This document shows, in pieces, positions 2,442 through 63,603 of a stretch of 64,000 bases of DNA. The position numbers and the translations under genes are program-made. The stretch lies in sequence record MZ475892.1, one strand, 5' to 3'. Positions within the stretch are counted from its first letter, which is position 1; each line of letters opens with the position of its first letter. The notes below the pieces were generated by a model. It was not told the DNA's origin. It searched no databases and was given only the letters and a program-made list of their open reading frames with translations.

Positions 2442-2825
2442 ATGCGTACTCTGATTCATACCGCAGACGTAACCAATCTGTCTGTGCTGGAACTGGAAGA
2501 AGGCTCTGTAGCAAAGCCTGTTACTCCAAGTCTGATTTCTGATCTCAAAGAGCTGTTATCTCGTGAAAACCTGAGCCAGAACATTCGCCACGTTGTGTTC
2601 ATCTCTGCTGACCAGGTCGGCGTATTCACCGAAGCTGAGATGATCAACTACTTCGACCCAATCGAGCAGGTGTCTGAAATCAACGCAGGCAATATCGGTA
2701 CTGTGCTGGCTATGCAGGTTATTCGTGTCGATGACAAGACTAATCTGATCGCAGTGGCTGGTGTCACTGATGTGGAAGAAGGCGTTACTATCAACGAGTT
2801 CAACGCATCGCCTGTAAATCTGTAA
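2442..2825 (+). CDS. Hypothetical protein (127 aa)
   Basis: GGAGA RBS, co-directional ORF, no recognised motif. Confidence 0.75.
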   Translation: MRTLIHTADVTNLSVLELEEGSVAKPVTPSLISDLKELLSRENLSQNIRHVVFISADQVGVFTEAEMINYFDPIEQVSEINAGNIGTVLAMQVIRVDDKTNLIAVAGVTDVEEGVTINEFNASPVNL

Positions 2826-2826
2826 A
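2819..2826 (+). promoter_or_regulatory. TCTGTAAA motif (candidate phage-sigma promoter)
   Basis: AATCTGTAAATA at a gene end; the motif recurs 9 times at gene junctions. Confidence 0.55.
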
Positions 2827-2895
2827 TAAAACAAGTGAGGGCAATCGTGTCCTCACTTAACTCACTCTGATAGGGCATTGACCCGGGAGATAAAC

Positions 2896-3618
2896 ATGAC
2901 AATCAAATTTGTCGAAGTACCGAACGTTAGTATGTTCGAGGGTCTGGTGCATGGCGCCAACCGACACGCACAAAACACCAACATCGGTGGCAAGGCTCGT
3001 TACGCATTCTACGTGGATGTGACAGAAGCTGCGGCCGAAGCTGCACTGTATTCAATGTTGCGCAAGAAGGCACACGCAGATGTTAGAGCTGTGGGCTACT
3101 CTGTTTCTCATACTGTGCGCGGTATGACTCAACCCAAAGAGATTCCTGTTTTCTTGTCCGACAACTTGTCGCACATATCATTGGATTCTTTGAAACAAAA
3201 TTTAGGTGAGTTGCTTCGCGCGCTATGCCGTTCGGCAGCCAGCTCTGATAGCAACATCATTCTGTATTACCAGAAGGACATGGCTTTCATCAAAAGCAAA
3301 ATGTTCGATTGGGTTCTTGAAAGCAAACTGAGCAGACCTTCAAAAGTAGACTGCGAACTGTATGTTCGTTCCTCAAATATCGATCTTAACGTCCTACTTA
3401 ATATCGTTAGAGATCACGATTACATTGGTCACTTTGCATCTAACATACCACAAGAGATTACAATAGGCTCTGATGCGAGTGCCATAGATGCGGTCAAGTT
3501 ATACGACACGGCCGACTTACTGGCTGCTCAAGGTCGCAAAGTGCATCTGTGCAATGACATTTATCGCAAAGCGTTGTCTATCTCCTTTGCCGACGGTATT
3601 CCGCGTAATCAACTGTAA
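2896..3618 (+). CDS. Hypothetical protein
   Basis: GGGAGA RBS before ATG 2896; no recognised motif. Confidence 0.7.
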   Translation: MTIKFVEVPNVSMFEGLVHGANRHAQNTNIGGKARYAFYVDVTEAAAEAALYSMLRKKAHADVRAVGYSVSHTVRGMTQPKEIPVFLSDNLSHISLDSLKQNLGELLRALCRSAASSDSNIILYYQKDMAFIKSKMFDWVLESKLSRPSKVDCELYVRSSNIDLNVLLNIVRDHDYIGHFASNIPQEITIGSDASAIDAVKLYDTADLLAAQGRKVHLCNDIYRKALSISFADGIPRNQL

Positions 3619-3661
3619 CCAAACACATTGCTGTGTGTAGTCTTTGGCCAAACTTAGGCTC

Positions 3662-3688
3662 GGGAGTCCAGGACGGGCTCCCATTTTT
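3662..3688 (+). terminator. Intrinsic terminator
   Basis: GGGAGTCC-AGGAC-GGGCTCCC followed by ATTTTT. Confidence 0.65.
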
Positions 3689-3705
3689 ATTTCGGAGACA
3701 GAACA

Positions 3706-4770: not shown

Positions 4771-4819
4771 TCACAATCAACCGTATCTTCCATAAAGGCG
4801 TTTAGCCTAGGAGAATCTT

Positions 4820-5578: not shown

Positions 5579-5652
5579 GAATAATCTTAGTCCGCTAACT
5601 AATTTAAAAACGTTGGCAAGTAGTGCTGACGTCTAGTTATCGGAGACATAAC

Positions 5653-6247: not shown

Positions 6248-6251
6248 TCTC

Positions 6252-6273: not shown

Positions 6274-6321
6274 ATTCGTTTATATGCTAATTTCTACCTA
6301 CATTCAACTAGGAGAGACAGC

Positions 6322-6981
6322 ATGAAAATATTCGTTTCGCTGTCGGCCCCACAAAAACAAAAAGAACCGCCGATTGTAACTGAATCTGATCAAAAGAATC
6401 CTCGCGTAAACGATAACAGCAAACTCGGTCAAGTGTTTGATGTGTTCGTGCTCCAGCAAATGTCCTATCTCGATATGAAAGAGATTCGTGGCTCTGCTGG
6501 TCCAAAGTACGCGCAGGTTATTGCCGACTGGCTTAACAGCCAACGCAGTATCGACAATAAGTTCCGTGTGTCTAAGCGCAGTAAGATCTCTATTGCTGTC
6601 AAGAACACTCAACAGCTTGCCGCTCGCTATACGGACATTTACCTGTTGAGTCCTGAGAGCAATAAAGAGCGTTCGTGGTTGCTTAAAGGCGAAGGCCCAC
6701 AAGGCAACAACAAGACGATTGAGATTGGTCGTAATCTCTTATTAGACGTCCTATATGCTTCTGCTCTGACGTTGCTTGGTGCACACCTCGTAACAGAAGA
6801 ATGGCCAGGCAACAGCACGTATGATCAAGTGTTGTTTGAAATGGACAAGCGAAGCAAACGTGGTAAAAGGATTGGTAAGCGCTACCCACGCATTGCCAAA
6901 GAAAATGAAAACACACTAATCACGATGATGCAGGACGGGTTGTCTATTGCAGAAATCACCGATTGGGTTCTGAAACAGTAA
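6322..6981 (+). CDS. Hypothetical protein
   Basis: AGGAGAG RBS; 219 aa. Confidence 0.75.
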   Translation: MKIFVSLSAPQKQKEPPIVTESDQKNPRVNDNSKLGQVFDVFVLQQMSYLDMKEIRGSAGPKYAQVIADWLNSQRSIDNKFRVSKRSKISIAVKNTQQLAARYTDIYLLSPESNKERSWLLKGEGPQGNNKTIEIGRNLLLDVLYASALTLLGAHLVTEEWPGNSTYDQVLFEMDKRSKRGKRIGKRYPRIAKENENTLITMMQDGLSIAEITDWVLKQ

Positions 6982-6990
6982 GAGGAATCT

Positions 6991-11794: not shown

Positions 11795-12400
11795 ATGTTC
11801 ACCAAAGCATTCTTCTTCAAAACTAACTACTCTGTATTGGCCGAAGGTGAGTTCGCGCTGCCTGTTGACTCACTGACCTCTCTCGTCAACTCGCGTATTT
11901 TCATCTGCATCACAGAAGACAACCTGCGCTTCGCACTGACCAACATCACTGTGCAGCCGATTCGCAATGGCTTCTTGCGCGTTGGCTTCGAGCCGAAGAC
12001 TGACGTGAATGCAATCACTACTCCAATCATCACGCCTAAAACGATGTGGAGCGAATATGATTTTGATGCGTGCAGTGTTGAAAACATCCCGTCATTCAAT
12101 ATCAGTACGCATGAAGACAAGAACAACGAACAACTGATTGCACTGTCATATGACCTTCGTATGGCTCTCATGCATTATCGTGAAGGCATGTACTGCGTGA
12201 CCGACATCGTTTTGCGCCTGCATGAGCATGGCATCTTTGTCGTAGATATTGATCAGAATCTCAAGGTTGCTCTCTCGCCTATCGCCGTGCTTAGCGAACG
12301 ACCTACACATGCGGTCAGTCTGAGTAAAGACAACGGTGTGCTGTCTCGCATTGATGACTTCGAACTGCCTGATCTCGCCAAACTGATCGTCCTACTGTAA
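11795..12400 (+). CDS. Hypothetical protein (start uncertain, 11771 or 11795)
   Basis: Long co-directional ORF. Confidence 0.7.
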   Translation: MFTKAFFFKTNYSVLAEGEFALPVDSLTSLVNSRIFICITEDNLRFALTNITVQPIRNGFLRVGFEPKTDVNAITTPIITPKTMWSEYDFDACSVENIPSFNISTHEDKNNEQLIALSYDLRMALMHYREGMYCVTDIVLRLHEHGIFVVDIDQNLKVALSPIAVLSERPTHAVSLSKDNGVLSRIDDFELPDLAKLIVLL

Positions 12401-12452
12401 ACAAACAACTCTAGCCTCGCATCGTGCGGGGCTTTCTGCTTTGGAGAATACC

Positions 12453-12713
12453 ATGTATCAATATGACCGCGATGAATTGAATGATCTGCCGCTTGACGTG
12501 CTGCATAGCGAAGCTGAAAAGCGTGGCTTGCTCGCTGACCTGGACGACGATGATGATTGTCCTGACCGTGCAGTGCTGGTGGGCATGATCATTGATGATC
12601 AGAACGAGCGCAATGCCGAAGACGAAGAGGAAGAGCAGCGCCGTCAGATGCAAGATGACGCTGACGATCACCGTCGCATGTTAGACGAACGCGACGGCTC
12701 AGACGACTGCTAA
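12453..12713 (+). CDS. Small acidic protein with an HeH-like module
   Basis: GGAGA RBS; LNDLPLDVLHSEAEKRGL..DRAVLVGMI. Confidence 0.7.
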   Translation: MYQYDRDELNDLPLDVLHSEAEKRGLLADLDDDDDCPDRAVLVGMIIDDQNERNAEDEEEEQRRQMQDDADDHRRMLDERDGSDDC

Positions 12714-13402: not shown

Positions 13403-13429
13403 AGGGCTGCCATCTTGGTGGCCCTTTTT
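13403..13429 (+). terminator. Intrinsic terminator
   Basis: AGGGCTGCCA-TCT-TGGTGGCCCT followed by TTTT. Confidence 0.8.
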
Positions 13430-13433
13430 GTTT

Positions 13434-13441
13434 TCTGTAAA
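13434..13441 (+). promoter_or_regulatory. TCTGTAAA motif
   Basis: Directly after a terminator and upstream of the next operon. Confidence 0.5.
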
Positions 13442-23898: not shown

Positions 23899-23906
23899 TC
23901 TGTAAA
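23899..23906 (+). promoter_or_regulatory. TCTGTAAA motif
   Basis: Intergenic, 33 nt before ORF 23939. Confidence 0.5.
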
Positions 23907-46057: not shown

Positions 46058-47338
46058 ATGTTCTACGACTATGTATTCAACTTCGACGAGCGCCAGACGC
46101 TACTGTCGTTAGCGGAATCCAAGTATCTTCTTAAACGGGACATTCCCGAGTATCTTAAAAAGTCCAAACACGCAATTGAGATTCGTCACACTGTGACCAA
46201 TCGTGGACGCGAGCGCCGCTCAGGAACAATAACAACTCCTATCGTGCCGCGTATTCACACCCGTGATGTTATGCGCTTGCTTGATGATATTCGTGACAAC
46301 GCGACTTACAGCTCCTGCCAAAGTCTCGCTGAACTGTTTGAATTGGGCTTGGGCGTTCCGCGCCAGAAAGATATTGCTACTTACCTTCATGCTTATTCGC
46401 GTGAGCACGATAAGAAAGGTATCGGTATCAAGTATATCCGCAAGCTGGTGGTTGATTATCATCGTAAGCACCGTCGTAGTATGGCGGGCAGTCGCTGGTT
46501 AATGCCTGCTGCTTACACGGCCAATCTGCTGAACATGCAGAACTTCATTCATCTGAAAGAAGACGGCTACAAGGGTAAAGTCAAAACGCCAGACGGCATC
46601 CCTGTAGTCTTGATTTACCAGAGCACTGAATACGCGACTGGCGAGTTTACTCTGTGTGACGCATTCATGATTAGTCCGATGGGATATCCAATGCCGTTCG
46701 CACAGATTGCGCTGCGTCCCGAGTTCAAGGCTGTGCCTAAAACGTTTTGCTCCCAAGCTCTGCGTGGCAAAGGCATGTACTCAATGGTTCTCGGTATGAT
46801 TTACTGGGAGAAAGGTGATTCAGTCGAATTGACACGCGAAGTCATGGAGATTGATGACAACCAGTATCTCACGTTGCTCGATGATGAACGTTATGCTGAC
46901 CGCCGCTCTGATGAATATTCAGCGATGCTGGTCAAGCGTGAAGAGTTCCGTCGCAATCGTGACAAGTGGCAGTCAGTGATTGATAAGTACGGCCAGACAG
47001 TTCGAACCCTCAAGCCTGAGATTAGCGCTCGTCTTGATCGTGCTCGTCAGTTCTTCTACGACCGCTCCGAGTTCCTGAAAGAGTTCGAGTCTCAGGAGAA
47101 GCGTGAGAACACCCGCGCATCAAAACGTTTTGCTGTAGCGTCTGCGATGTTTGCTGCGATTGACTGTGGGACAATTGCTGATCGTCAGACCTACCTTGCA
47201 GTGAGCACAAAGATTGATAAAGTGCATGACATTCTCGGTAAGTGGGGATTCAACACTGTAAAATCTGTTAATGCTAGTTTGAAGAAGTCTCTTTTAACCT
47301 ATGACGAATCAGGCGTATCTCGCGTCTGGTCACTATAA
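46058..47338 (+). CDS. Hypothetical protein (426 aa)
   Basis: Long ORF. Confidence 0.8.
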   Translation: MFYDYVFNFDERQTLLSLAESKYLLKRDIPEYLKKSKHAIEIRHTVTNRGRERRSGTITTPIVPRIHTRDVMRLLDDIRDNATYSSCQSLAELFELGLGVPRQKDIATYLHAYSREHDKKGIGIKYIRKLVVDYHRKHRRSMAGSRWLMPAAYTANLLNMQNFIHLKEDGYKGKVKTPDGIPVVLIYQSTEYATGEFTLCDAFMISPMGYPMPFAQIALRPEFKAVPKTFCSQALRGKGMYSMVLGMIYWEKGDSVELTREVMEIDDNQYLTLLDDERYADRRSDEYSAMLVKREEFRRNRDKWQSVIDKYGQTVRTLKPEISARLDRARQFFYDRSEFLKEFESQEKRENTRASKRFAVASAMFAAIDCGTIADRQTYLAVSTKIDKVHDILGKWGFNTVKSVNASLKKSLLTYDESGVSRVWSL

Positions 47339-50300: not shown

Positions 50301-50365
50301 GCTCTGTCTTCGACGAAGAGGAAGATGAGTCCGAAGAGGACGAGTCAGAAGAAGACGAAGAGTAA
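47360..50365 (+). CDS. 1001-aa highly acidic protein with several HeH-like repeats
   Basis: GAGGAG RBS in a hairpin; several D/E tracts; ENLSLDQMRSAL, ENFSRSDLKLLV, ALPYSTLLSFA modules. Confidence 0.88.
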   Translation: MSENNQSGATRFGTEVQAGIAEAQRRANSAESGKLNKCTIIVLTSIDANQRYSYLSADEQLREELVRGKVINRLPDLLERAGGNTAADNNSAFHILHPNNGVPTSIDARIKVGEGNAVILSYTVNKAVTEMHGSLSLALFASGAEDLNDLAADFGIHAIAIVEESKAAEFIKGLEAQVEALNIVNLTSIDDSNDSLDLPVIDFAALAGNPTTVLTGAVRTFIMQSISGEVFAAIPNNGELNVKNDNVAQPADLEEDFDNNDEIVDQNGGEGEVTGEELLGYKAENLSLDQMRSALEAINYDLSEMTEEAIREAFETEQNLYLGGGDDESSEEEEDEDAADVDSDEEEEEEDEEFDAPAYLAQALAAENFSRSDLKLLVKSQDLKVMKNDTPETLVQKLLDLVQDASSDEVFELITVFVELLDEHGVECDALRATIAEDESDEDEEEDGEDEDADEDGDDEEEEDEEESDEDESETESDDETETLSVADVTDPLDYFRFNGGDLTAEQRIAAVESMGTSTVGLNIVQVMKAFNEIRSQSNLIDIAADEADSALYDMLTALPYSTLLSFAQEIELDIDGDESAEDLVTLLMDESTADSDTLKALAYVFETYGGLGVEADDILLMDWHEALALVIPVYASSDEVESDAEDEDEDVIADEDSSNANLKFLKSVDVNNPVGPMLEVDMDRTLVINYTFTDGNTYRDVQDELADIGGVNYRFPFNLGKAGKANKSSAPGSLIAPAEHLIAMLDRAGTTRFLADPNTFDVGVWAESLERMLNAEIANNLYAGRIEDGADPQQAGIVVGDFIDEDEQAEVADLGLLDEDELEAYTGDHLPIASLYNAQARVRPVNVDSSYVALSTVVLNVAVPGFWCDSDVGRLVQACVNRVISLAESVEGIKVYAGFTLESAALLNNGRLYEVVGALREMDGVQSYSAADAANFSEAEDIIEVASSIDDRDLPFTVLASGLSGATFENGGDLTVLVPCSVFDEEEDESEEDESEEDEE

Positions 50366-50416: not shown

Positions 50417-51238
50417 ATGTCAGAACAAGTTGACCACTCAGCTAACATCATTAAGATGGTTAGTGACCGTGATGCAAAGATTAGCGAGCTGTCCGTTACG
50501 GCAAACGAGCTGCAAGGTCAGGTGAATGACTATGCTGCCGAACTTGCCGCATCTGCTGTTCGTGAGACTGCGTTGCGTTTGAAGCTACGTTCTCAAGAGC
50601 GCCAGACGAATACCGATTTCGTTCGTCTGAAAAATCGCACGAAAGAGCTGGTGGATATTTCAAACACTCAGATGGCCGAAAGCAACGAGCTTAAAGCACG
50701 CGTTGAAGAAATGAACGCTAAGCTGGCGCAAGTTGACCCGATGCCGTTCGTGCTGCATCTGGTTGCTGTGCAAGCTGCATCTGTGTTCTCGTACATGGTG
50801 CAGTCGTTTGCTCATGCTCATGTTAACCAGCGTACCAACGATACCACACGCACACTCAGTGCTCTGATGGTAGGCGAAACAGCGCGGCGTTATCAGTCTT
50901 TCGAAAAGACCATCGCTCGTTACTGCAACTCGATTGGCGCTGAACGTCCGAAAGCAAATGATGTGCGTAACGCTTTCCCTGACTTCATGCGTAATGAAGC
51001 TGATTTATTCTGTAAAGACCCGAAGTACAGTCACGATTGCATGGCCTTAGCTGCTATGCTTAATCTGCCTCGTACATCGTGGATGTATCGAAAGTCTCTG
51101 GATGCCGTAAACCACTTCGCGTGGATTGCAGCTTTCGAAGGCAGTCCTCAAGAGTTTGAGTCAGAATCAGATTACAACGAATTATACGTTAACTCGCTTA
51201 TCGATATTGCAAGCGCGTTAATCGGGCAAAACTTTTAA
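50417..51238 (+). CDS. Protein with an N-terminal coiled coil
   Basis: Heptad-rich first 100 aa. Confidence 0.8.
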   Translation: MSEQVDHSANIIKMVSDRDAKISELSVTANELQGQVNDYAAELAASAVRETALRLKLRSQERQTNTDFVRLKNRTKELVDISNTQMAESNELKARVEEMNAKLAQVDPMPFVLHLVAVQAASVFSYMVQSFAHAHVNQRTNDTTRTLSALMVGETARRYQSFEKTIARYCNSIGAERPKANDVRNAFPDFMRNEADLFCKDPKYSHDCMALAAMLNLPRTSWMYRKSLDAVNHFAWIAAFEGSPQEFESESDYNELYVNSLIDIASALIGQNF

Positions 51239-51271
51239 TCTGTAAAACTTCCCTGTGATTTATTCTGTAAA
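51239..51271 (+). promoter_or_regulatory. Tandem TCTGTAAA motifs
   Basis: Copies at 51239 and 51264 upstream of ORF 51334. Confidence 0.6.
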
Positions 51272-51333: not shown

Positions 51334-51903
51334 ATGGCAAAAGCTACTAAGTCAACTAACCTGGTTCCTACCCTGGTTTCTCGCATCGCTAAAAAGTCTG
51401 GCTCTATCGGTACTTCGAAAGCAAAAGCAACTGACCTGCCGCATGACATTCTGATCGAATCTCAGCACGTTGTCGAAATCATCGGTTATATCACTGACCG
51501 TTCTGCGAACCACGTTACTCTGCGTCACAAAAAAGGCCACGGTTCTTCTTCTCAGATCGTTTCAACCTTCGGCCCGGGTCAACTGCTGACCGTTCTGGGT
51601 GAAGCTGGTTCACACGGTTCTGTGCGTGCGCTGATTACTGCTCCGGTCTGCGAACTGAAAGGCTTCACCATTAAGTATGACGGCGATACCATCATCGCTA
51701 CTTCTATCGAAACTGGCGAAGTGATTCACGTTAACACCCAGCTGGCCGGTCACACCGTTCGCGCTACTGTGAACGAAACTGCCGCCGCTAAGAAATACGG
51801 CACGCCTGCTCCAGGCAAAGGCAAGAAAGATGCTAAGCCTGCTAAAGCAGACAAAGCAGCGAAAGGCGGTAAGAAAAAGAAAGGTAGCGACGAAGACTTT
51901 TAA
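51334..51903 (+). CDS. Beta-rich protein with a K/A-rich C-terminal tail ending DEDF
   Basis: GGAG RBS; strongly biased codons. Confidence 0.82.
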   Translation: MAKATKSTNLVPTLVSRIAKKSGSIGTSKAKATDLPHDILIESQHVVEIIGYITDRSANHVTLRHKKGHGSSSQIVSTFGPGQLLTVLGEAGSHGSVRALITAPVCELKGFTIKYDGDTIIATSIETGEVIHVNTQLAGHTVRATVNETAAAKKYGTPAPGKGKKDAKPAKADKAAKGGKKKKGSDEDF

Positions 51904-51918: not shown

Positions 51919-51984
51919 TCTGTAAAAACTGATTATGCAGAGCAACAAAAATAAAGTTGCTCTGCCGTTAAACGAATCTGTAAA
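51919..51984 (+). promoter_or_regulatory. Tandem TCTGTAAA motifs
   Basis: Copies at 51919 and 51977 upstream of ORF 52033. Confidence 0.6.
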
Positions 51985-52032: not shown

Positions 52033-52833
52033 ATGGCTAAATCTGCTAAAGTAACCGTAACCGTCGCACAGAAAGTTCTGGCTCAGATGCTGGGTGTTGT
52101 TGTAGCGAACGCAAGCGAGAAAGAACTCGTTGCGATTCTGTCTGACCTGGGCCTGACTGTTGCTGCGAAAGGTAAAGGTGCTAAAGCTGAGAAAGCTGCG
52201 AAGGGCGGCAAGAAAGCTAAAGCCGCTACCGTTGCTCAGATCGTTAAGGCCGTTGAAGAAGAGGAAGCTATCTCCCTCGACGGCGTGAGTGAAGATGACC
52301 TGCGTGCAGCGGTCGTCAAAGCTAAGCTGGCTAAGGCCAACAAAGCTAAAGCGCTGGACGAAGAGGAGTTGACTGAACTCCTGACCGACGCAATGGGTGC
52401 CGAGTCTGATGAAGACGAGGAAGAGGACGAAGAAGAAGAGGACGAAGACGAGGACGAAGACGACTCGGACGACGAAGACGAAGATGAAGACGACGAGGAC
52501 TCAGATGATGAAGATGAGGACGAAGACGACGAAGATTCGGACGACGAAGACGAGGACGAAGATGATGAGGAGGAAGACGAAGACGAGGATGAAGATGAGG
52601 ACGAAGATGAAGATCTCGACCTTGACGGCCTCGACGAAGACGAACTCCGCGCCCTCGTGATCGACAACAAGCTGGCCACTAAGGCCAAAGCTAAAAAGAT
52701 GGACGAAGACGAACTTCGTGAACTGTGTGAATCCCACTTCGGCGGCGACGATGAAGACGAAGACGAAGATGAGGACGAAGACGATGAAGACTTCGACGAT
52801 GAAGACGAAGACGAAGACGACGACGACGAATAA
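52033..52833 (+). CDS. Polyampholyte protein: basic N-terminus, two HeH-like modules, about 70-aa D/E tract and a D/E tail
   Basis: AGGA RBS before ATG 52033; the DSDDEDEDEDDE unit repeats three times. Confidence 0.85.
   Translation: MAKSAKVTVTVAQKVLAQMLGVVVANASEKELVAILSDLGLTVAAKGKGAKAEKAAKGGKKAKAATVAQIVKAVEEEEAISLDGVSEDDLRAAVVKAKLAKANKAKALDEEELTELLTDAMGAESDEDEEEDEEEEDEDEDEDDSDDEDEDEDDEDSDDEDEDEDDEDSDDEDEDEDDEEEDEDEDEDEDEDEDLDLDGLDEDELRALVIDNKLATKAKAKKMDEDELRELCESHFGGDDEDEDEDEDEDDEDFDDEDEDEDDDDE
52400..52615 (+). repeat. Coding low-complexity GAY/GAR repeat (D/E tract)
   Basis: Near-pure Asp/Glu codons with a 36-nt period. Confidence 0.9.
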
Positions 52834-52890: not shown

Positions 52891-52979
52891 TTCGAAAAAT
52901 AGTTCGAATTATTTCGCAAAAAGTTTGAAAAATTCCTGTCGTTGTTTATTGCACATAGTAATATTCGACTACAGGAATT
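52891..52979. other. AT-rich segment with phased TTCGAA-like repeats and an inverted repeat
   Basis: TTCGAA 52891, TTCGAA 52903, TTCGCA 52913, TTTGAA 52924; AATTCCTGT...ACAGGAATT. Confidence 0.55.
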
Positions 52980-53046
52980 AAACCTGAAAAATTTTACTTT
53001 TATCCAACGCGACGAGTCGCACAAAATAAATTCACGGAGTTATGCC

Positions 53047-53568
53047 ATGACTAAGAAAATCATTTCCGGCCTGAACAAAAACCTGAAAGCTATCGCTAAA
53101 TCAGAAGCTGCCCTGGCCAAAACTGTTGCTGCTACCAACAAAGAGATCGAAAACCTGGGTTCACAGCGTGCTGGTATCGAAGCGCAGATCGCTGAACTGT
53201 CTGGCGTTGCTGCTCCTGACAAAGCTGATAAAAAAGCTAAAGGCGCGAAAGCTGAAAAAGCGGCCAAGCCTGCTAAAGCTGAAAAAGCAGCTAAAGCCGG
53301 TAAGAAAGAAAAAGCTGCTAAAGCTGAAAAGCCAGCCAAAGCTGATAAAAAAGCTAAAGGCGCCAAAGCAGAAAAAGCAGAAAAAGCTACTAAGCCTGCT
53401 AAAGCTGAAAAAGCTGGCAAGAAAGAAAAAGCTGCTACCAAGCCTGCTAAAGCTGATAAAAAAGCTAAAGGCGCCAAGGCGGACAAAGCTGCTAAAGGCG
53501 GTAAAGCTGACAAAGCCGGTAAGAAAAAGAAAGCGCAGTCTGATGACTTCGAATTCGAAATGGAATAA
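53047..53568 (+). CDS. Histone H1/Hc2/AlgP-like K/A-rich protein with an N-terminal coiled coil
   Basis: KADKKAKGAKA(E/D)K three times, KPAKAEKA repeats, acidic end SDDFEFEME; GGAG RBS. Confidence 0.82.
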   Translation: MTKKIISGLNKNLKAIAKSEAALAKTVAATNKEIENLGSQRAGIEAQIAELSGVAAPDKADKKAKGAKAEKAAKPAKAEKAAKAGKKEKAAKAEKPAKADKKAKGAKAEKAEKATKPAKAEKAGKKEKAATKPAKADKKAKGAKADKAAKGGKADKAGKKKKAQSDDFEFEME

Positions 53569-54972: not shown

Positions 54973-55043
54973 ACATATAGGACAAGTAGTGTCTGAATAT
55001 GCTAATATCGAGTGGTCAACGCTACTCATTAGGAGAAACGAAA

Positions 55044-57068
55044 ATGGCGAAAACGCCTAAAGCCGCAAAAGTCAAAAAGGGTGACGGCTCCCAAGATGGC
55101 TTCACTATCGCAGAAGGGTTGGACGGCATAAGGCTAAACCCTGGCATGTACATGGGTCAACAGGGTGCGGACATGGCGTATCGCGCTGTGAAAGAACCTG
55201 TGGACAATGACTACGATGAATACATCGCTGGTCGTAACAAGTTGATCGAAGTGGTCATTGATTACGATAGCGACCTGAACATTGTAGCTGACCAAGCAGG
55301 CGGCATTCCTACCGACTTCAAGAAACTAAAAGACGGTACGAAAGAAACGATCATGACCGCAGCGTTTAGCCGTGTTCATGCGGGTGGTAAATTCAACGAT
55401 CAGGCATATAAGACCTCAGCTGGTACACACGGTGTGGGTGTAGCCGCACTGAACGCAATCTCCAGTCAGTTGCGTGTATGGTCAATGTACAAAGGCAGTT
55501 GCGCTTATCAGATGTGGCAGTGTGGCGAAGTCAAGTCTGGCAAAGACCCTAAGAAAGTCAAGACCATCGACAAAGACGTTATGAGCCTGCTGCGCGATAA
55601 GAAGCACAGCAAGTACGGTACTGTGGTAGCGTGGACGCTTGACCAGACTGTTGTGTCTGCTGATGCGCAGCGTGGTAAGAAGCTGCCTAAGAACTACCGC
55701 CATGCTGCTCCTAATCCAGCTCAGCTTGGTGAGTGGCTGCGTAACATGTCGATGCTCAACCCGGGCCTTGAGATTCGCCTGACGTTGATCAAGAAGGGCA
55801 AGCGCAAAGAGTTCACGTTCATCAACAAGAAAGACCTGAACTATGTTGTGAAGACTATGTGTGAAGAACGCGAGCTGGGTACTGTCGGCAAGCCGTTCAT
55901 CTTCAAGTCTGACAATATCACGGCTGCGCTCGTCTGGACAGATCATGCAGACACCGACAACTTCCTCAGTTTCGTTAACACCAGCCCAACAGTTGACGGC
56001 GGGTGGCATGTAGTAGGTTTCCGTGATGCTCTGTTTGATGCAATCAAGCCGTTCATGAAAGAACCGAAAGGTAAGGGCAAGAAAAAGCAGGGCTTCAAAC
56101 AAGAAGACTTGTTGATTGGCCTGACCGGTATGTTCGACTGGCGTATGCACGGTGCTCAATACACCTCGCAGGTAAAAGACAAGCTGGCCAGCCGCGTCGA
56201 GAAAGACGTGTACGAAATGCTGAAAGATGCTTTCGTGAAATACTTCAAGGACAATAAGAAGGTCGCTACGACAATCATCAAGCGTGCCGAAGCGATGAAC
56301 AAGGGACGTGAAGAACTCAGCGCCGTCGTTAAGTCTATGGCTGATACGAAGAAGAAGCTGAAAGGTAACGCACTGCCTGCCGACCTCGTTGTCGCAAACA
56401 AGTGTAAGCCGCATGAGCGTGAGCTTGTCGTGGTGGAAGGGGATTCTGCTGGTGGTACTGCAAAAGATGCGCGTAACCCTGACTATCAGGAAGTTATGAA
56501 AGCTGGTGGTAAGCCGCTGAACGGTCTGAAAGCAAGTCTGGCTGACGTGCTAAAGCACAAAGAAGTGCAGGGCATGCTGGTGAGTATCGGTGCTGACCTG
56601 AAGTCGCTTGACCCGAAAGCAGAAGCACCAAAGTTAAGCACAAAGAATCTGCGTATCGGCAACATCCTGTTCCTTGCTGATGCTGACCCAGATGGCTTCC
56701 ACATCAACGTGCTGTTCCTAGGTGTTATCTATCGCTTGCTGCCTGACTTGATGAAAGAAGGTCGTGTGTGGATTGTTGACGCACCGCTGTATAACGTTAT
56801 TCATCAGGGCAAACACTACGGTGGTATGACGTTTGAAGAATGCCGTGCTAAAGCGCCGTCTGCTGTAAAAGACAAAGACATTGTACGCGCTAAAGGTTGG
56901 GGTGAAGTTGAACCTGACGTGCTTGAAGCAATCGCGTTCAATCCGAAAACTCGTCGTCTCATTCGTGTTAACCCGTTTGAGAACGTTGAGCAGGAACGTT
57001 TCTTTAGAGGTGTAGTTGCAGAAGATGCCGTGCACCGTCGTCGCTTACTCGGTCTGGAGGCAGCATAA
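55044..57068 (+). CDS. gyrB: Type IIA topoisomerase B subunit (GyrB/ParE-like)
   Basis: IRLNPGMYMG, EPVDNDYDE, HAGGKF, GTHGVG, EGDSAGG, DADPDGFHI, KGWGE. Confidence 0.95.
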   Translation: MAKTPKAAKVKKGDGSQDGFTIAEGLDGIRLNPGMYMGQQGADMAYRAVKEPVDNDYDEYIAGRNKLIEVVIDYDSDLNIVADQAGGIPTDFKKLKDGTKETIMTAAFSRVHAGGKFNDQAYKTSAGTHGVGVAALNAISSQLRVWSMYKGSCAYQMWQCGEVKSGKDPKKVKTIDKDVMSLLRDKKHSKYGTVVAWTLDQTVVSADAQRGKKLPKNYRHAAPNPAQLGEWLRNMSMLNPGLEIRLTLIKKGKRKEFTFINKKDLNYVVKTMCEERELGTVGKPFIFKSDNITAALVWTDHADTDNFLSFVNTSPTVDGGWHVVGFRDALFDAIKPFMKEPKGKGKKKQGFKQEDLLIGLTGMFDWRMHGAQYTSQVKDKLASRVEKDVYEMLKDAFVKYFKDNKKVATTIIKRAEAMNKGREELSAVVKSMADTKKKLKGNALPADLVVANKCKPHERELVVVEGDSAGGTAKDARNPDYQEVMKAGGKPLNGLKASLADVLKHKEVQGMLVSIGADLKSLDPKAEAPKLSTKNLRIGNILFLADADPDGFHINVLFLGVIYRLLPDLMKEGRVWIVDAPLYNVIHQGKHYGGMTFEECRAKAPSAVKDKDIVRAKGWGEVEPDVLEAIAFNPKTRRLIRVNPFENVEQERFFRGVVAEDAVHRRRLLGLEAA

Positions 57069-57802: not shown

Positions 57803-59464
57803 ATGCCAATCAAACCTAAGAAAGTCAAAGCGGCCAAAGCAGTTAAGCCTGCTAAAGCGACCGCTGTAGCGAAGCCGCTTAAAGTCAAAGTGAAATCGAA
57901 AGCCGTTTCTGTCGATGACATTAAGACAAAGAAAAAGTCGAAAGAAGTTGCCACAGTGCAGACAGGCGCATCGCTCTATCCGATGATTGGTCAAGACGAA
58001 TCGAACATTCGTGATCAGGGTCTCGCAGATTACACACGCCACGCGCTAGGTGTGTACGGTTCTTACGTTGTTGAAGACCGAGCTATCGCTGACTATCGTG
58101 ATGGCCTCAAGCCTGTGCACCGTGCGCTGCTGTGGTCGTTGTCTGATCTTAACTTGCGTCCTGGCGGAGCGTTCAAGAAGTCTGCGCGTACTGTTGGTGA
58201 CACGATTGGTAAGTATCACCCACACGGCGATGCTGCCTGCTACGGCGCAATGGTAACGATTGCAAACACAGTGCCACCAGCTGTTGCTGGTTCTGGTAAC
58301 TGGGGTAGCCCTGTTGACCCCGCTGCTGCGATGCGTTATACCGAAGCGAAGATGAGTAAGTTCACGGGCACGTTCTTGCTCGACTCTGATTACTTAGAAG
58401 TTGTGCCGCGTGTGCCTAACTTCTCAAACGATCTTGAGCTGCCACTTTACTTGCCTGCGCTGCTGCCTTACATGTTGTTCAATGGCTCTGTGCCTGCACC
58501 AGCGTACGGCGTCAAGTGTGGTAACCCGTCATTCAGCTTCACGTCCGTATCTAAAGTCGTGTGTGAGATGCTGAGTGGCAAAGAGTACACAGCGAAGACG
58601 CTTGCGAAGACGCTTGAGATTCGCCATGAGTTCGGTTGTATCGACGTTAGCTCTGACGAAGATATGTATCAGCTCATCTCAACAGGCCGCGGCAAAGTCA
58701 CATACGAACCGCTGATTAAGATCGATGAGAAGTCGAAGACCATCACGATTCAAACGTATGTGCCTGCCGGTATGTCCAACACTGCGGGTATCACGAAGAA
58801 GCTGGAGAAGATTTCTGAGTGGCCAGGCATTAGCTCCGCAGCAAACGCCAGTGGTAAGAAGAACAAGAACGCAGGTCCTTACGGTGCAGCGTTTGAGTTC
58901 CGCGTACGTGGCAGCGAAGACCAGTTGTATGAACTCGCCTCACGCATTCAGAAGGAAGTGACTGCGGGCGTCAACTACAATCTGGGCGTTACGATTCGTC
59001 GCGCTGATAAGCCGAACACCTTCAAGTATCTGAACTATCTGGATTACTTCAAGGCGTGGGTAGCGTATCGTATCAAACTCGAAACAGCCATGCTGAACAA
59101 CAAGCTGGCCAAAGCAGAGAAAGCCTTGCACTTGCAGCAAGTATATCTGTGGGCTGTTGACAACATGAAGCAACTGCTGGCTGCCTTGCCTAAAGTGTTA
59201 GTAGCAGAAGACCCAGACAAAGCGCTGGCCAAAGCGTGCAAGATTCCAGTTGAAGATGCGAAGATCATCCTCGACCGTCAAGTGCGTAAACTGGCTAAGC
59301 TGGAACGTGGTGGTCTGGTCGCTAAGATCAAAGACATTAAGGAAGAGATTGCTGGTTATAAGGCAGGCTTGAAAGCGCCAGGCAAATATGCAGCACAGAG
59401 CACGGCTGCTAAAGTCAAAGCGTACATCAAATCACCTGATGATAAGCTGCCCGTAAGTCTTTGA
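57803..59464 (+). CDS. gyrA: Type IIA topoisomerase A subunit (GyrA/ParC-like) lacking the C-terminal pinwheel
   Basis: RAIADYRDGLKPVHR, KSARTVGD, KYHPHGD, GNWGS, AAMRYTE (catalytic Tyr). Confidence 0.95.
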   Translation: MPIKPKKVKAAKAVKPAKATAVAKPLKVKVKSKAVSVDDIKTKKKSKEVATVQTGASLYPMIGQDESNIRDQGLADYTRHALGVYGSYVVEDRAIADYRDGLKPVHRALLWSLSDLNLRPGGAFKKSARTVGDTIGKYHPHGDAACYGAMVTIANTVPPAVAGSGNWGSPVDPAAAMRYTEAKMSKFTGTFLLDSDYLEVVPRVPNFSNDLELPLYLPALLPYMLFNGSVPAPAYGVKCGNPSFSFTSVSKVVCEMLSGKEYTAKTLAKTLEIRHEFGCIDVSSDEDMYQLISTGRGKVTYEPLIKIDEKSKTITIQTYVPAGMSNTAGITKKLEKISEWPGISSAANASGKKNKNAGPYGAAFEFRVRGSEDQLYELASRIQKEVTAGVNYNLGVTIRRADKPNTFKYLNYLDYFKAWVAYRIKLETAMLNNKLAKAEKALHLQQVYLWAVDNMKQLLAALPKVLVAEDPDKALAKACKIPVEDAKIILDRQVRKLAKLERGGLVAKIKDIKEEIAGYKAGLKAPGKYAAQSTAAKVKAYIKSPDDKLPVSL

Positions 59465-59467
59465 AAA

Positions 59468-59475
59468 TCTGTAAA
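59468..59475 (+). promoter_or_regulatory. TCTGTAAA motif
   Basis: AAAATCTGTAAATA right after the gyrA stop. Confidence 0.55.
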
Positions 59476-59493
59476 TAGACTATGATAAACTCT

Positions 59494-59545
59494 GCACTAA
59501 GTTGGACAGAAGCCGCTTGAGATTATTCTTAGTCTATGATATACT
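59494..59545 (+). promoter_or_regulatory. Box promoter 13
   Basis: GCACTAAGT-TGGACA-GAA, 31-nt spacer, TGA-TATACT; TTGAGA at the -35 position. Confidence 0.7.
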
Positions 59546-59683
59546 GGTACTGTTGATTGCAGACATTCTGACGAGGGTTTTCTGCAATCATGCCAGAAAA
59601 AGGAGGGTAGCGTATATAAGCAAAAGACGTAGCATAAGTTGGGATGAAAATTCGAGCCGAAAAGGCCGGACGCTGTTTCAAGA

Positions 59684-59712
59684 TTGACCTCTGAAACGGC
59701 AAATATTATAAT
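59684..59712 (+). promoter_or_regulatory. Canonical sigma70 promoter
   Basis: TTGACC-17 nt-TATAAT. Confidence 0.8.
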
Positions 59713-59818
59713 CGACCTACAGAATACTAATATGTAGTTGCAGCACATTAGTTTCGACGTGTCGCTAGGGCCAAGAGTACGGTCCTCAACTCTTTTATGA
59801 GAAGTTTGGAATCCGCAA

Positions 59819-61093
59819 ATGAAAAATCAGGTACACAACCTCAAAGCTGGTTTGAACGTAGTTGTCACCTCACTGACGGAACTGCGTTCTGGAAAAAACA
59901 TGAAGCGCCAGCATGTTGTTGAAGTATTAGGTCAGCCGTCTACCGTTTTGACTGACCTCACAAAGGCATTGAAAAGTAATACCTTCAAGTCATATCCTGA
60001 TGTACTCCAGTTGCGCGACTCAGTTCGTGCGACAAGCACTACCTGTCTTAACCTGTTAGAGCAAGTGGTATCTCGCCGTATCAAGCCACGCGATCTGATG
60101 GAAAAACTTGGTGAAGTTGTGAAGTCGTTTGAAGCCGACGTTAAGCTGGCTGATTCGACCCTCGGGTATCTGCCTGAATCTCGTAAGACTCTCTCGCTCG
60201 ATGACGTTGAGCGCGATGCTGATGGTAAGCTGAATCTCAAATCCTTGAATGCGGTCAGTGAAAAGATCTATGAGCAAGAGACGAACGATAAGGCGATACG
60301 CAGAGAGCAACGCGAAGACGCAGCGACAGTAAAGACCAGTCGTGTGCTCCAGCGTCTCAAAGATTCGTATGCTCACAAAGTCCCAAGAACGTTCAATAAA
60401 GCCATTCAAATAATCCAATTGCCTGTGATGGCACGATTCGGTACGCTCGCTATGAGTCCTGAGTCGCTGTCTAAGATGGGATTCAAAATTCAAACTGCTG
60501 GTCTGCACTCCACCCCGAGTTCTGACTTAGGTATTGTCTTTGAAAACCAGTTGCTGCTTTTCTTCCGTATGTCTGACGCTAAAGGCGTTGCAGAAGAAGC
60601 TGCAAAGAAACACAAGGACCTCGATGGAACTCTCGTAGAACGCAAACGCCTCCAGAAAGAAAGAAACGCAGAACGCCGCGACATTAAAAAGCTCACTCAG
60701 CTTTTGGCGGAAAACAAGTCACTCGTAGCCAAGCGCAAAATCCGTGAGCAGATTGCGGAAGCACAGGGCAACGTTGACGACATTACTGCGACTCTTGACG
60801 ACATGGACCAAAAGGTGCGCTCATCGAACTCCAAAGAGCGTGTGTATCGCCAGATGAAAACATCAAGCGATCATGCGATGCTGGATTACCTTAACCCTAT
60901 CGTCGATATGCTCAACGAGAAAAGCAGTTCAACTCTCGGTCTGTTTACTACCATGCCGTTACGCGGTGTCATGAAAGACGCTGACGTGCATTGCGCATGG
61001 CTCATGGAACAATCAGCTATTCGACTTCTGTTGCGCCACTGTGGCGGTGACGTGAAGTTGCAGAACTGGTTCTTGCCGTGGACTAATGGCTAA
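59819..61093 (+). CDS. Hypothetical protein with coiled-coil segments
   Basis: 424 aa; heptad-rich region around LQKERNAERRDIKKL. Confidence 0.8.
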   Translation: MKNQVHNLKAGLNVVVTSLTELRSGKNMKRQHVVEVLGQPSTVLTDLTKALKSNTFKSYPDVLQLRDSVRATSTTCLNLLEQVVSRRIKPRDLMEKLGEVVKSFEADVKLADSTLGYLPESRKTLSLDDVERDADGKLNLKSLNAVSEKIYEQETNDKAIRREQREDAATVKTSRVLQRLKDSYAHKVPRTFNKAIQIIQLPVMARFGTLAMSPESLSKMGFKIQTAGLHSTPSSDLGIVFENQLLLFFRMSDAKGVAEEAAKKHKDLDGTLVERKRLQKERNAERRDIKKLTQLLAENKSLVAKRKIREQIAEAQGNVDDITATLDDMDQKVRSSNSKERVYRQMKTSSDHAMLDYLNPIVDMLNEKSSSTLGLFTTMPLRGVMKDADVHCAWLMEQSAIRLLLRHCGGDVKLQNWFLPWTNG

Positions 61094-61625
61094 CGAAAAT
61101 CGTTTACCAGCGGAAACAAAAGGTGCGTTAACACGGTGTATCATCTGCGGTCAGTTTAGCCGCGCGATTCACTACCACCATACTGTTCCCCGCTCACTGG
61201 GAGGCGAGCACTCGCTCCAAATCCCAATAGACGGTAACTGCCACACAACGCTCCATGCGAAAGCAGAAGCTGTGGTAGCGCGTTTGGCCGGTAACCGTAA
61301 ACAACCAATTGGTCAGTTCTGGGACGACCCAGATGCTGAGCAACGAGCTGAAATGTGGCTAACGATTCTGGTAGATGCAATGCTTAATCCTCCAGTGCAG
61401 CCCGGACAGAAAGAAGTCCTGTTGCCGATGATTAAGGTTGATTTAGAAACCAGACATGCGTTAGAATTGTTGAAGCGTGACACACCAGGCATAACAAACA
61501 TGGGCCAAGTGTTGCGCTACTGTATTGAGACAACGTTAAAGGTTAAGGGGTTAAAAAATGGCAAATCAGAAAATCCGCACTCTGGACATCAAAGCACTCG
61601 TAAAAAGCGAGATGACCTGTGGTGA
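61086..61625 (+). CDS. HNH-family protein with a possible C-terminal ribbon-helix-helix
   Basis: CIIC..HHTVPRSLGG..DGNCHTTLH; MIKVDLETRHALELLK..NMGQVLRYCIE. Confidence 0.7.
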   Translation: MANENRLPAETKGALTRCIICGQFSRAIHYHHTVPRSLGGEHSLQIPIDGNCHTTLHAKAEAVVARLAGNRKQPIGQFWDDPDAEQRAEMWLTILVDAMLNPPVQPGQKEVLLPMIKVDLETRHALELLKRDTPGITNMGQVLRYCIETTLKVKGLKNGKSENPHSGHQSTRKKRDDLW

Positions 61626-62421
61626 TTGCAGAGGGTTGACGCGGGATGCGTTATTACCTACAGCGGAAAAACCGTGTGCTACTCAAGGGCAGTTGCCAGA
61701 TGCTAAGATCTGCAAGCACTATCGCCCTGACAGCGCATCACTGACTACCTTAATGTCTGAGAATGGCGATTCATTGATCGCTATGTTCAACACAGTAAAA
61801 GACTTTAGCACCAAAGACTTGCACGTTGTTGCTGGTCTGTTGTTACGTGAAGCGAAGACGCGTAGCTACGGTGTGCGCATAGGTCAAGCTGTGTTCGTGC
61901 GCTATCAAGGCCGCGAGACGCGCAACTATCTCAACAACTTTATGGCAGCGCGTGTGCTTGACGTTGACGACGAAACGATTCGCCTTATTTCCGAGAAGGG
62001 TGACATTGTTCTGACTTACGCCAACACAGGGTTCTCTGGACCGTCTGTCTATTCTAAACAGCAATTCACCAAACTGCGCAAGGAGATGAAAGCCAGTGGT
62101 AAGTTGATCGATCCTGAACGTCAGATCAAGACTACGAAACGCATGTTACCTATGGAAGACAATGTTAGCTTCTCCGCACCGAGTTCGCTCGATGGCTTCT
62201 CAATCCCGATGATGGATGAAGTTGTCAAAGGCCGTGGTGCTAAGCGTAAGGGCAAGAAGACCAACACGCTGGTGGACATTGTGAGCATGATCGATAACGG
62301 TTATGACATGGGTGCAGAGCAAGACGAGTCTGGTGTTATGTCGCTGGGCAGTAACAGCTACAAGAACAAAGGCAAGCGCATTCAGAAAGGCGCTGTCGAA
62401 CTGTCTGACCTCGAAGGTTAA
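61558..62421 (+). CDS. Hypothetical protein with a Cys-rich N-terminus
   Basis: CGDC...C...C possible Zn site. Confidence 0.75.
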   Translation: MANQKIRTLDIKALVKSEMTCGDCRGLTRDALLPTAEKPCATQGQLPDAKICKHYRPDSASLTTLMSENGDSLIAMFNTVKDFSTKDLHVVAGLLLREAKTRSYGVRIGQAVFVRYQGRETRNYLNNFMAARVLDVDDETIRLISEKGDIVLTYANTGFSGPSVYSKQQFTKLRKEMKASGKLIDPERQIKTTKRMLPMEDNVSFSAPSSLDGFSIPMMDEVVKGRGAKRKGKKTNTLVDIVSMIDNGYDMGAEQDESGVMSLGSNSYKNKGKRIQKGAVELSDLEG

Positions 62422-62463
62422 TCTGAACAACTCTTACCATAATATACGATTAGGATCTCGGAA

Positions 62464-63603
62464 ATGATCACAGAAGAAATCACTCTTAATGCTTACCTCT
62501 CACAGCGTCTGAACCTCGAAGAAGATTCAGAGCAATTCCGCCGAGTATACGCAGCCACGATCAAATATATTGGCAGCGGTTATAAGTCTATCGCAGGTTA
62601 TCATCGTGACCTGCAATCCGAAGTAGATTTTAAGCAATTTGAGTTCACAGCGCCAGACTTGCGTATTGATATTTCTTCCATATGTCGTTTTACTCTCAAG
62701 CTGCGTTTCTTCGTGCTGGCTGTATGCTTGCACAAGGACCCAAAAGAGATTGTTCAAAAGTATGCAGCGTATGGTCTCTCCAAGCGTGAGGCCGTGCTTG
62801 CATGGAATACATTGTTGAAAGAAGTCGCAGCCCGCACACAGATTCGTCGTATGGCCAAACAGAAGTCCAAGACTAAGGGCGGCCTTGATGTTACGATGGT
62901 TAGTAGTCGTGAGCTTCGTCTTCGCCTTGACCAGACAGCCAGCCTGTTTGCAGAATTGCATCGCAGTGCGAAGCGTCTGGTCAGAAAGAATCTTATGTGG
63001 GTGAGCAAGAGCGAGAACATCCCTCTGCCAGATCTGACCTGTGACATTATGTGCAAGGTGCTGTTGTCGTATTATCAGTCGCTGCCTAATCGTTTCTCAG
63101 AAGCCCACCAGCTCAACTACCTGCGTGCGTCTCTGAACAACCGCATCAACAACATGAACAACTACTACAGTGCAGACTGCCGCAAGCGTATGCACAAAGT
63201 GGGCGAAGACAAGTATGAGATTCTTGTTATGTCTGACAATCAGATGTGGCATAATCCGGAAGATGATTCGTCTGCCTCGTACGAGGACCTGTTGGCTTCT
63301 GATGCGCGTGTTCATACCGAAGAGATGGAAAACAATCTGACTATTAATCGCCTTCTTGAGGAAGCTGAAGGCACTAAGCGCCACAAGCTGTACAGTACGG
63401 TGTTAGGCCGAGACTGTGCCGAGTTCACTGAGTATCTCCGCGACAACGGTATGCTCAAACAGACAATGACGTGTGCGACTCAATGGTTCATGGCCAAGCC
63501 CTACAAGTTCATTCGTAAGCATCTTGCGCAATGGCTTGAAGTGGCAGTTGAGACGGTTAACGCCGGTCTGGTAACATTACGTGGTTCTTTGCAGGCAGCA
63601 TGA
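62464..63603 (+). CDS. Divergent sigma70-family RNA polymerase sigma factor
   Basis: Region-2-like DLTCDIMCKVLL..NYLRASLNNRINNM, linker SDN..EDD..SYEDLL, region-4 HTH LAQWLEVAVETVNAGLVTLR. Confidence 0.65.
   Translation: MITEEITLNAYLSQRLNLEEDSEQFRRVYAATIKYIGSGYKSIAGYHRDLQSEVDFKQFEFTAPDLRIDISSICRFTLKLRFFVLAVCLHKDPKEIVQKYAAYGLSKREAVLAWNTLLKEVAARTQIRRMAKQKSKTKGGLDVTMVSSRELRLRLDQTASLFAELHRSAKRLVRKNLMWVSKSENIPLPDLTCDIMCKVLLSYYQSLPNRFSEAHQLNYLRASLNNRINNMNNYYSADCRKRMHKVGEDKYEILVMSDNQMWHNPEDDSSASYEDLLASDARVHTEEMENNLTINRLLEEAEGTKRHKLYSTVLGRDCAEFTEYLRDNGMLKQTMTCATQWFMAKPYKFIRKHLAQWLEVAVETVNAGLVTLRGSLQAA

Follow-up and report, generated by a model that had tools for sequence, protein, structure and literature searches.

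A CTGTAAA box in the Erwinia jumbo phage pEa_SNUABM_34 is a probable single-element promoter of replication genes

Introduction

Steering the host RNA polymerase with a phage-encoded sigma factor that acts on class-specific promoters is a textbook strategy of bacteriophages. In phiEco32, the phage sigma gp36 acts on a one-part element, tAATGTAtA; transcription starts 6–8 bp downstream, and gp36 serves middle as well as late promoters (PMC8948821). Group 2 jumbo phages, which have no RNA polymerase, also encode sigma factors (PMC7824862). The Erwinia jumbo phage pEa_SNUABM_34 (S34; MZ475892.1, 264,306 bp) belongs to the clade of the jumbo phages PaBG, Lu11, Y3, Yoloswag, and Alexandra, and in PaBG two proteins have been linked to sigma factors by HHpred: gp118, with a probability of 99.9%, and gp112, a possible second sigma factor, with a probability of 97% to sigmaE (PMC7412058). 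Here we describe a short word, TCTGTAAA, with the core CTGTAAA, in the last 64 kb of the S34 genome (record 200307–264306). This stretch of 64,000 nucleotides (nt) is called the window, and positions refer to it unless they are given as record positions; a 4.6-kb piece of it was compared with the S34 record and is 100% identical.

The box, aAAT-CTGTAAA-(T/C)A, is best explained as a single-element promoter of a middle, replication-gene class, and it probably is one, read by a phage sigma-like protein on host core RNA polymerase. Comparative evidence gives good support to the promoter reading, and from it we infer activity, start site, and timing. The core of the box is already known from the annotation of Lu11; what is added here is its conservation at orthologous sites, its apparent restriction to replication and other putative middle genes, and a separate box at virion genes. 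The interest lies in the reader of this one-piece promoter, for which there are two sigma-like candidates of very different kinds.

Results

The word is enriched, confined to the coding strand, and placed ahead of genes

The window contains ten copies of TCTGTAAA, all on the + strand, compared to 2.83 expected over both strands, and none of 100 dinucleotide-preserving shuffles of the window reached ten copies. A preliminary description of this DNA had listed nine copies (2819, 13434, 23899, 28101, 51239, 51264, 51919, 51977, and 59468), all at gene ends or intergenic, and had put the chance expectation at about one copy per strand. All nine are present on the + strand and in such positions, and the expectation is fair because 2.83 copies are expected for the two strands together; a tenth, intragenic copy at 51009 had been overlooked. 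Genome-wide counts were made on the whole genome rebuilt from pieces of the record, and gave 32 copies of TCTGTAAA compared to 4 of the reversed control. Genes of S34 run in three blocks (+ at 1–46 kb, − at 46–185 kb, and + at 185–264 kb of the record), and 32 of the 32 copies lie on the coding strand of their own block. Unbiased k-mer discovery in intergenic DNA recovered the core, CTGTAAA, which occurs 55 times in sense and 3 times in antisense orientation across the genome; third-order Markov expectations are 20 and 10, respectively, and the antisense avoidance recurs in two relatives.

Sense copies of the core also cluster at a defined place relative to genes: 36 of 54 (67%) lie 5–110 nt upstream of a start codon, compared to 14.8% of random positions (p = 7e-18). 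In the deposited annotation of record 214400–264306, every gene is a 'hypothetical protein'; genes beyond the deposited annotation come from our own simple longest-open-reading-frame caller, so single box-to-start-codon distances may be off. Several boxes stand directly 3′ of a recurrent GGGTGGCTTCGGCTGCCC hairpin with a T-run. This terminator-like hairpin recurs genome-wide (GGCTTCGG occurs 19 times sense and 3 times antisense), often immediately 5′ of promoter boxes, forming apparent terminator–promoter junctions.

The box is conserved at orthologous genes and has no −35 partner

Relatives carry the box in similar numbers and in the same strand blocks, with 31 copies in Yoloswag, 34 in Y3, and 38 in the Dickeya phage JA11, compared to 5 to 11 for controls. 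We paired orthologues as reciprocal best hits between called genes of S34 and those of Yoloswag and JA11 (median protein identity 55% and 49%, respectively). The box is kept in front of the Yoloswag orthologue for 18 of 23 S34 box genes (odds ratio 88, p = 6e-16) and in front of the JA11 orthologue for 15 of 20 (p = 7e-13). Across orthologous upstream regions, conservation is limited to the box; its flanks are scrambled, and its spacing from the start codon varies. Thus, the word is non-random, strand-locked, clade-conserved, and placed like a promoter, which supports the promoter reading of the preliminary description.

The consensus of 118 pooled sites, collected by the word CTGTAAA, is aAAT-CTGTAAA-TA. 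This consensus contains no −35 element, and the only upstream enrichment consists of terminator remnants; the '-10-only' shape named earlier therefore holds. Position +15 of the 118 sites, 6–7 nt past the 'TA', is a purine in 83% and C in 3%, and transcription would probably start at this purine. The earlier comparison was with the T4 late promoter TATAAATA, which differs by one base from the three copies that read TGTAAATA (2819, 28101, and 59468). The G responsible for that difference is invariant in the pooled sites by construction, because they were collected by CTGTAAA. No single-base variant of CTGTAAA matching TATAAATA passed the strand-bias screen, and TATAAATA and the near variant CTATAAA were both absent from the enriched and strand-biased words of the k-mer discovery.

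Replication genes follow the CTGTAAA box and virion genes follow a second box

By PHROG assignment, the genes downstream of CTGTAAA include DNA polymerase, a second polymerase subunit, a processivity factor (sliding clamp), a clamp loader, an NAD-dependent ligase, an SbcD-like nuclease, and PHROG 17569, 'RNA polymerase sigma factor'. The box lies 15–110 nt before the genes for DNA polymerase, clamp, clamp loader, NAD ligase, SbcD, and the PHROG 17569 protein, called the canonical sigma below. Many small genes of the + block are preceded by it as well.

A second strand-locked box, (G)CTAATTT (gC-TAATTT; GCTAATTT), occurs 19 times sense and 2 times antisense, 22–46 nt before start codons. It is found in record 47–177 kb and is concentrated at 47–120 kb, the virion module, where it precedes the tail sheath gene, a PAAR protein gene, and genes for large unassigned proteins, and it is kept at orthologous genes of Yoloswag and JA11 (p = 5e-7 and 6e-8, respectively). 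Its TAATTT fits the TAnnnT pattern of −10 elements, and from its placement it is probably a late promoter class. The window has a GCTAATTT copy of this late type at 6286–6293 (+), after a hairpin and 28 nt before the open reading frame (ORF) 6322–6981, and a (G)CTAATTT box at 5599–5605. Because the genes behind TCTGTAAA are on the replication side and the virion genes carry the other box, TCTGTAAA would mark a middle class and not an analogue of T4 late promoters. The T4-late analogy of the preliminary description thus fails on gene content (replication, recombination, and sigma genes behind one box, virion genes behind GCTAATTT).

Surroundings of the boxes in the window

The first box of the window (2819–2826, +) reads TCTGTAAATAA and overlaps the stop codon of ORF 2442–2825; the next ORF begins ~52 nt on, and a second CTGTAAA lies 7 nt upstream, at 2812 (+). 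The box at 13434–13441 (+) directly follows a terminator-like hairpin with a T-run, read from the sequence as GGGCTGCCA-tctt-GGTGGCCC (13404–13433, +), and an in-frame ATG at 13478 follows after 36 nt; this hairpin (GGGCTGCCA...GGTGGCCC) is a variant of the recurrent GGGTGGCTTCGGCTGCCC hairpin. The copy at 23899–23906 (+) falls in a gap between deposited coding sequences (CDSs), 32 nt before ATG 23939, and that at 28101–28108 (+) lies inside the final 15 nt of CDS 27867–28115, with the next CDS, at 28187, 78 nt on. Boxes at 51239, 51919, and 59468 begin 1–16 nt past a stop codon. Two boxes of the core type also occur, one without the leading T at 12395–12401 (+), 46 nt before ORF 12441–12713, and one at 47256–47262 (+), inside the 3′ end of ORF 46058–47338 and 104 nt before the ORF of a 1001-amino-acid (aa) protein (47360–50365).

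Doubling of the box upstream of two unusual genes, reported in the preliminary description, was confirmed. Copies at 51239 and 51264 (51239–51271, +) lie between a stop codon at 51238 and ATG 51334 of a 189-aa, lysine-tailed protein (ORF 51334–51903), and copies at 51919 and 51977 (51919–51984, +) precede ATG 52033 of a 266-aa protein that is 47% Asp+Glu (ORF 52033–52833). Both proteins are of extremely low complexity, and the doubling at 51919/51977 is seen in Yoloswag too. The arrangement of doubled boxes suggests very high expression of these two genes. They belong to a cluster of low-complexity proteins (52033–52833, 42264–43856, 52942–53568, and 51334–51903), one marked by 47% Asp+Glu, one by long poly-Glu/Asp runs, one by Lys/Ala repeats (AEKAAKPAKA-like), and one by a lysine-rich tail. 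The tenth TCTGTAAA copy (51009–51016, +) lies within ORF 50417–51238, 230 nt before its stop codon, and its function is doubtful. A 16-nt string, TGATTTATTCTGTAAA, is common to 51001–51016, around this intragenic copy, and to the intergenic 51256–51271; either a short stretch was duplicated, or the box has a longer variant form.

Two sigma-like proteins differ in sequence and architecture

The 379-aa product of ORF 62464–63603 (+) is the orthologue of PaBG gp112, and its family is confined to the PaBG/Lu11/Y3-type clade. Its AlphaFold model (pLDDT 82) predicts an extra helical domain over the N-terminal ~140 aa, followed by a sigma2-like domain (143–243), a disordered linker, and a sigma4-like domain (290–379). 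Residues 143–243 superimpose on domain 2 of extracytoplasmic function (ECF) sigma factors with Z 9–10 and a root-mean-square deviation (rmsd) of 2.2–2.5 Å over 77–82 residues; the matches include 5uxx_C (Z 9.9, rmsd 2.5, 82 aa), 9m98_F (Z 9.8), and 1h3l_B (Z 8.8), and the top five rows of the fold comparison are all sigma factors. Foldseek ranks chains of sigma H and sigma A highest (E 0.085). Residues 290–379 align with domain 4 of sigmaA (4g6d_A; Z 6.2, rmsd 2.5, 61 aa), a low Z for a helical domain, and alignments over both domains, to sigma H and sigma L, cover residues 143–379. The preliminary description had called this ORF sigma70-like, with region 2 and 4 patterns. A sigma-like fold is borne out by the model, and no sigma match was found at the sequence level; the protein is thus supported as sigma-like at the level of predicted fold only.

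That description had also allowed for another sigma factor encoded outside the window. One is indeed encoded there, at record 197807–198844 (PHROG 17569), 1.5 kb upstream of the window. This canonical sigma is of the PaBG gp118 type, and its family is broad: many members match Pfam Sigma70_r2, and RefSeq relatives are annotated as sigma factors. The family profile aligns to region 2 of SigA and keeps the Y..WWI block, and the model of a 96%-identical member superimposes on the region 1.2–2 fragment of E. coli sigma70 (1sig_A) with Z 12.2 over 219 residues. Neither a sigma3 nor a sigma4 domain could be clearly made out, and the protein looks truncated because its C-terminus is short and partly disordered. 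The box stands directly 5′ of the canonical sigma gene in S34, Yoloswag, and JA11.

The two sigma-like proteins have no detectable similarity to each other, and hhalign gave a probability of 0.1% for their two families. A Pfam search found no domains of a multisubunit RNA polymerase; the search for the single-subunit type (PF00940) had an uninformative control, so absence cannot be read from it. As no phage RNA polymerase was detected, the host core enzyme would have to transcribe these genes.

A conserved gap with sigma70-type promoters precedes the ORF 62464 operon

The box at 59468–59475 (+) lies at the 5′ end of a 354-nt gap (59465–59818) that follows the gene for the topoisomerase A subunit, and AATCTGTAAATA at this box is invariant in S34, Alexandra, Y3, and Yoloswag. 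The gap precedes the operon of ORF 62464 and contains two good sigma70-type promoter-like sites. One, TTGAGA-17-TATACT with an extended −10 TG (59517–59545, +), keeps its −10 part in four phages; the other, TTGACC-17-TATAAT (59684–59712, +), has 11/12 matches, and its −10 is kept in Y3 and nearly in Alexandra. Overall, the −10 parts are conserved in Alexandra, in Y3, and partly in Yoloswag. ORF 62464 could therefore be an early product.

The gap is unusually long and is conserved across four phages. It also holds a conserved block at ~59713–59750 and, just before ATG 59819, a conserved GGGCC...GGTCC hairpin (59767–59786), and from these features it may be a regulated leader or encode a small RNA. 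Matches to a strict sigma70 consensus in the whole genome number 4 sense and 15 antisense; two of the four sense matches fall in the gap, and two lie near record 1.9–5.6 kb. This clustering suggests that early transcription may begin near the end and the start of the record.

Upstream of the gap, a type II topoisomerase is split into GyrB-like and GyrA/ParC-like genes (54999–57068 and 57803–59464, respectively). Downstream, a third topoisomerase gene (61558–62421) falls in a PHROG named 'DNA topoisomerase', and the sigma-like ORF adjoins this gene from the Erwinia phages to PaBG and Lu11. ORF 61086–61625, which weakly matches an HNH endonuclease (Pfam E 0.002), lies between ORF 59819–61093 and the topoisomerase-like ORF 61558–62421 and overlaps both at its ends, possibly as an inserted homing endonuclease gene.

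Discussion

A possible three-tier programme

The separate box at virion genes suggests three tiers of expression on host core RNA polymerase, steered in the later tiers by phage-encoded sigma-like proteins. Early genes would be transcribed from host sigma70 promoters, such as those of the 59465–59818 gap, middle genes from the CTGTAAA class, and late genes from the TAATTT class. In the assignment that we prefer, which is unproven, the ECF-like protein of ORF 62464, made from an operon with sigma70-type promoters, would read CTGTAAA. The canonical truncated sigma, with its region 2 Y..WWI block, would be made from a CTGTAAA promoter and would read the TAnnnT-like late box. A canonical sigma gene driven by the box, as its position in three phages indicates, fits a role one step later than that of ORF 62464, and CTGTAAATA does not fit the TAnnnT of sigma70-type region 2, whereas the TAATTT late box does. 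The full version of this proposal is tentative, and we would not put it at even chances: the gp112 family would be a true second sigma, too diverged for any sequence model to recognise and with an added N-terminal domain of ~140 aa, made early from sigma70 promoters, that reads CTGTAAA without a −35 contact and launches a clade-wide three-tier cascade. If so, a succession from host sigma70 to a gp112-type sigma to a truncated, RpoD-like sigma acting on TAATTT would be common to a clade of jumbo phages that infect Gram-negative bacteria.

Several observations weigh against this proposal. The ORF 62464 operon itself begins with a CTGTAAATA box, and in JA11 the gap before this operon holds three boxes and no obvious sigma70 promoter, both of which weaken the argument for an early sigma. 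An ECF-like sigma with a sigma4 domain would normally use a −35 element, which the box does not have, whereas single boxes are what one expects a truncated sigma such as the canonical one to read. ORF 62464 matches no sigma model in Pfam, in NCBIfam, or in a PDB profile search, and a fold Z near 10 is not decisive for helical proteins. With regard to the box itself, approximately one-third of the CTGTAAA copies lie deep within genes, that at 51009 being an example, and we judge promoter activity and timing by position and gene content.

The distribution of the proteins does not decide who reads the box. Phages with a distant canonical sigma and no detectable gp112 show no clear enrichment (30 copies vs 26 for the control in the Vibrio phage GR7B, 25 vs 23 in the Xanthomonas phage PhiXhv-12, and 12 vs 4 in the P. 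putida phage Peetri), and HRDY3 and the Yersinia phage fHe-Yen9-02, which have both sigma-like proteins, are enriched for the box. Such co-occurrence counts cannot separate the two candidates because both proteins diverge together, and a presence/absence contrast between PaBG and Lu11 fails because PaBG keeps a degenerate box. The pairing of sigma-like protein and box is something that we infer, with the canonical truncated sigma as a candidate reader of equal standing.

Alternative readings

The strongest alternative gives the box to the canonical truncated sigma, in a self-amplifying loop, with ORF 62464 reading GCTAATTT or being no sigma at all. This protein has regions 1.2 and 2 of a primary sigma by its model and matches the region 2 profile of SigA, and its RefSeq relatives are annotated as sigma factors; its architecture, in which sigma3 and sigma4 are not clearly present, is one that reads single boxes in phiEco32 (PMC8948821). 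If the box is set in a sigma70 frame, TAAATA would take up −12 to −7 and +1 would coincide exactly with the purine peak at +15, the box directly precedes the canonical sigma gene in the three phages named above, and motif enrichment tracks the clade in which the canonical sigma is >36% identical. Against these points, a sigma70-type region 2 pocket expects a T at −7 that CTGTAAATA lacks, and TAATTT is the box that fits TAnnnT; if the canonical sigma gene depends on its own promoter alone, something else must set it off, and no such trigger was found immediately 5′ of the gene; and PaBG keeps the canonical sigma at 34% identity, yet its box is degenerate. Taken together, this loop is possible but on the unlikely side.

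At the middle promoters of T4 replication genes, a MotA box together with AsiA redirects host sigma70. The S34 box could by analogy be bound by a phage activator through which host sigma70 holoenzyme is redirected, and would then not be an element that a sigma factor recognises; the downstream genes belong to the same class, replication, and the clade has been placed among the T4-like 'group 2' jumbo phages (PMC7824862). In the 118 sites, however, TAnnnT occurs at no fixed spacing downstream (its sole peak is inside the box, over a baseline of 1.7%), and the box is often just 15–45 nt from the start codon, leaving little room for a −30 box plus a leader. With no −10 hexamer at a fixed spacing behind the box, we regard an activator of this type as improbable.

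It is less probable still that the word is not a promoter and acts instead as a polar signal (Chi-like or KOPS-like) or an RNA processing site, or is a by-product of stop-codon context. Strand-locked octamers can be related to replication or recombination, about a third of the copies are intragenic, and many copies touch stop codons, the last because TAA is inside the word. However, polar signals spread through genes, unlike a word with two-thirds of its copies shortly upstream of starts; orthologous genes in different genera keep the box in front of them; and the box follows terminator hairpins and does not form them. A Chi-like signal and a stop-codon artefact were ruled out on position (67% of copies near starts, and an actual stop codon of the upstream gene supplied by just 2 of 32 TCTGTAAA copies), and an RNA processing site is compatible with the sequence alone.

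Finally, a T4-late-like, −10-only promoter for late structural genes, as first proposed, shares with our data the single box without a −35, the one-base distance of TGTAAATA from TATAAATA, and a geometry to the purine peak that resembles T4 late promoters, and is hardly credible given that replication, recombination, sigma, and small + block genes lie downstream, that the tail sheath and PAAR genes carry GCTAATTT, and that neither TATAAATA nor CTATAAA is among the enriched or strand-biased words.

Together with the two sigma-like genes and a candidate region of early control, the two boxes make up a testable map of the S34 expression programme. The map transfers to ~60 related jumbo phages of Erwinia, Dickeya, Yersinia, and Pseudomonas, several of which are in development against fire blight.

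Comparison with known systems

PaBG gp112 is the orthologue of ORF 62464 and has the same place beside a topoisomerase gene (PMC7412058). PaBG differs in having only a degenerate AAACTGT(g/a)AA box, and the description of that phage contains no promoter analysis (PMC7412058). The T4 late promoter TATAAATA, served by gp55, gp33, and gp45, resembles the S34 element in being a single −10-type box without a −35 and in its one-base distance from three S34 copies; it differs in that the S34 box stands at replication and not virion genes and has G for A throughout at the second position of the T4 word. For neither S34 sigma-like protein was a relationship to T4 gp55 found (7d7d_F, only Z 6.3).

In the Bacillus phage SPO1, host sigma acts early, gp28 in the middle period, and gp33/34 late (PMC13401047), which is the logic proposed here for S34. 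The SPO1 promoters are bipartite, its proteins are unrelated in sequence to those of S34, and its host is Gram-positive, and the S34 cascade is a proposal. phiEco32 resembles the design proposed for S34: a phage sigma on host core, a single element without a −35, a start distance that matches the geometry deduced for S34, a sigma gene that is itself a middle gene, and a sigma without region 4, as the S34 canonical sigma appears to be. It differs in being an unrelated podovirus with a different word and in using one sigma for both classes, where S34 has two boxes and two sigma-like proteins; the phiEco32 system is experimentally proven and the S34 case is predicted from sequence.

The closest counterpart is in Lu11 (NC_017972), a Pseudomonas phage of the same clade with the same two sigma-like genes. 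Its record contains a regulatory feature, 'putative middle/late promoter', consisting of a 16-mer, CTGTAAATGGTGAGTA, with the same core as the S34 box. This promoter, a prediction as in S34, was reportedly proposed in 2012 by Adriaenssens et al.; our own literature search for the box word returned unrelated papers only. In Lu11, CTGTAAAT occurs 48 times compared to 6 for the control, with the consensus AAAA-CTGTAAAT-A-N4-GTA. In the Lu11 box, the base ahead of the C is usually A where S34 has T, and the GTA downstream is stronger; the A-rich sequence on the 5′ side and the conserved A at +15 are shared with the S34 box. With the core and an A/T-rich 5′ flank, an orientation lock, placement before start codons, and conservation at orthologues all found in S34, its box belongs to the Lu11-type CTGTAAAT class.

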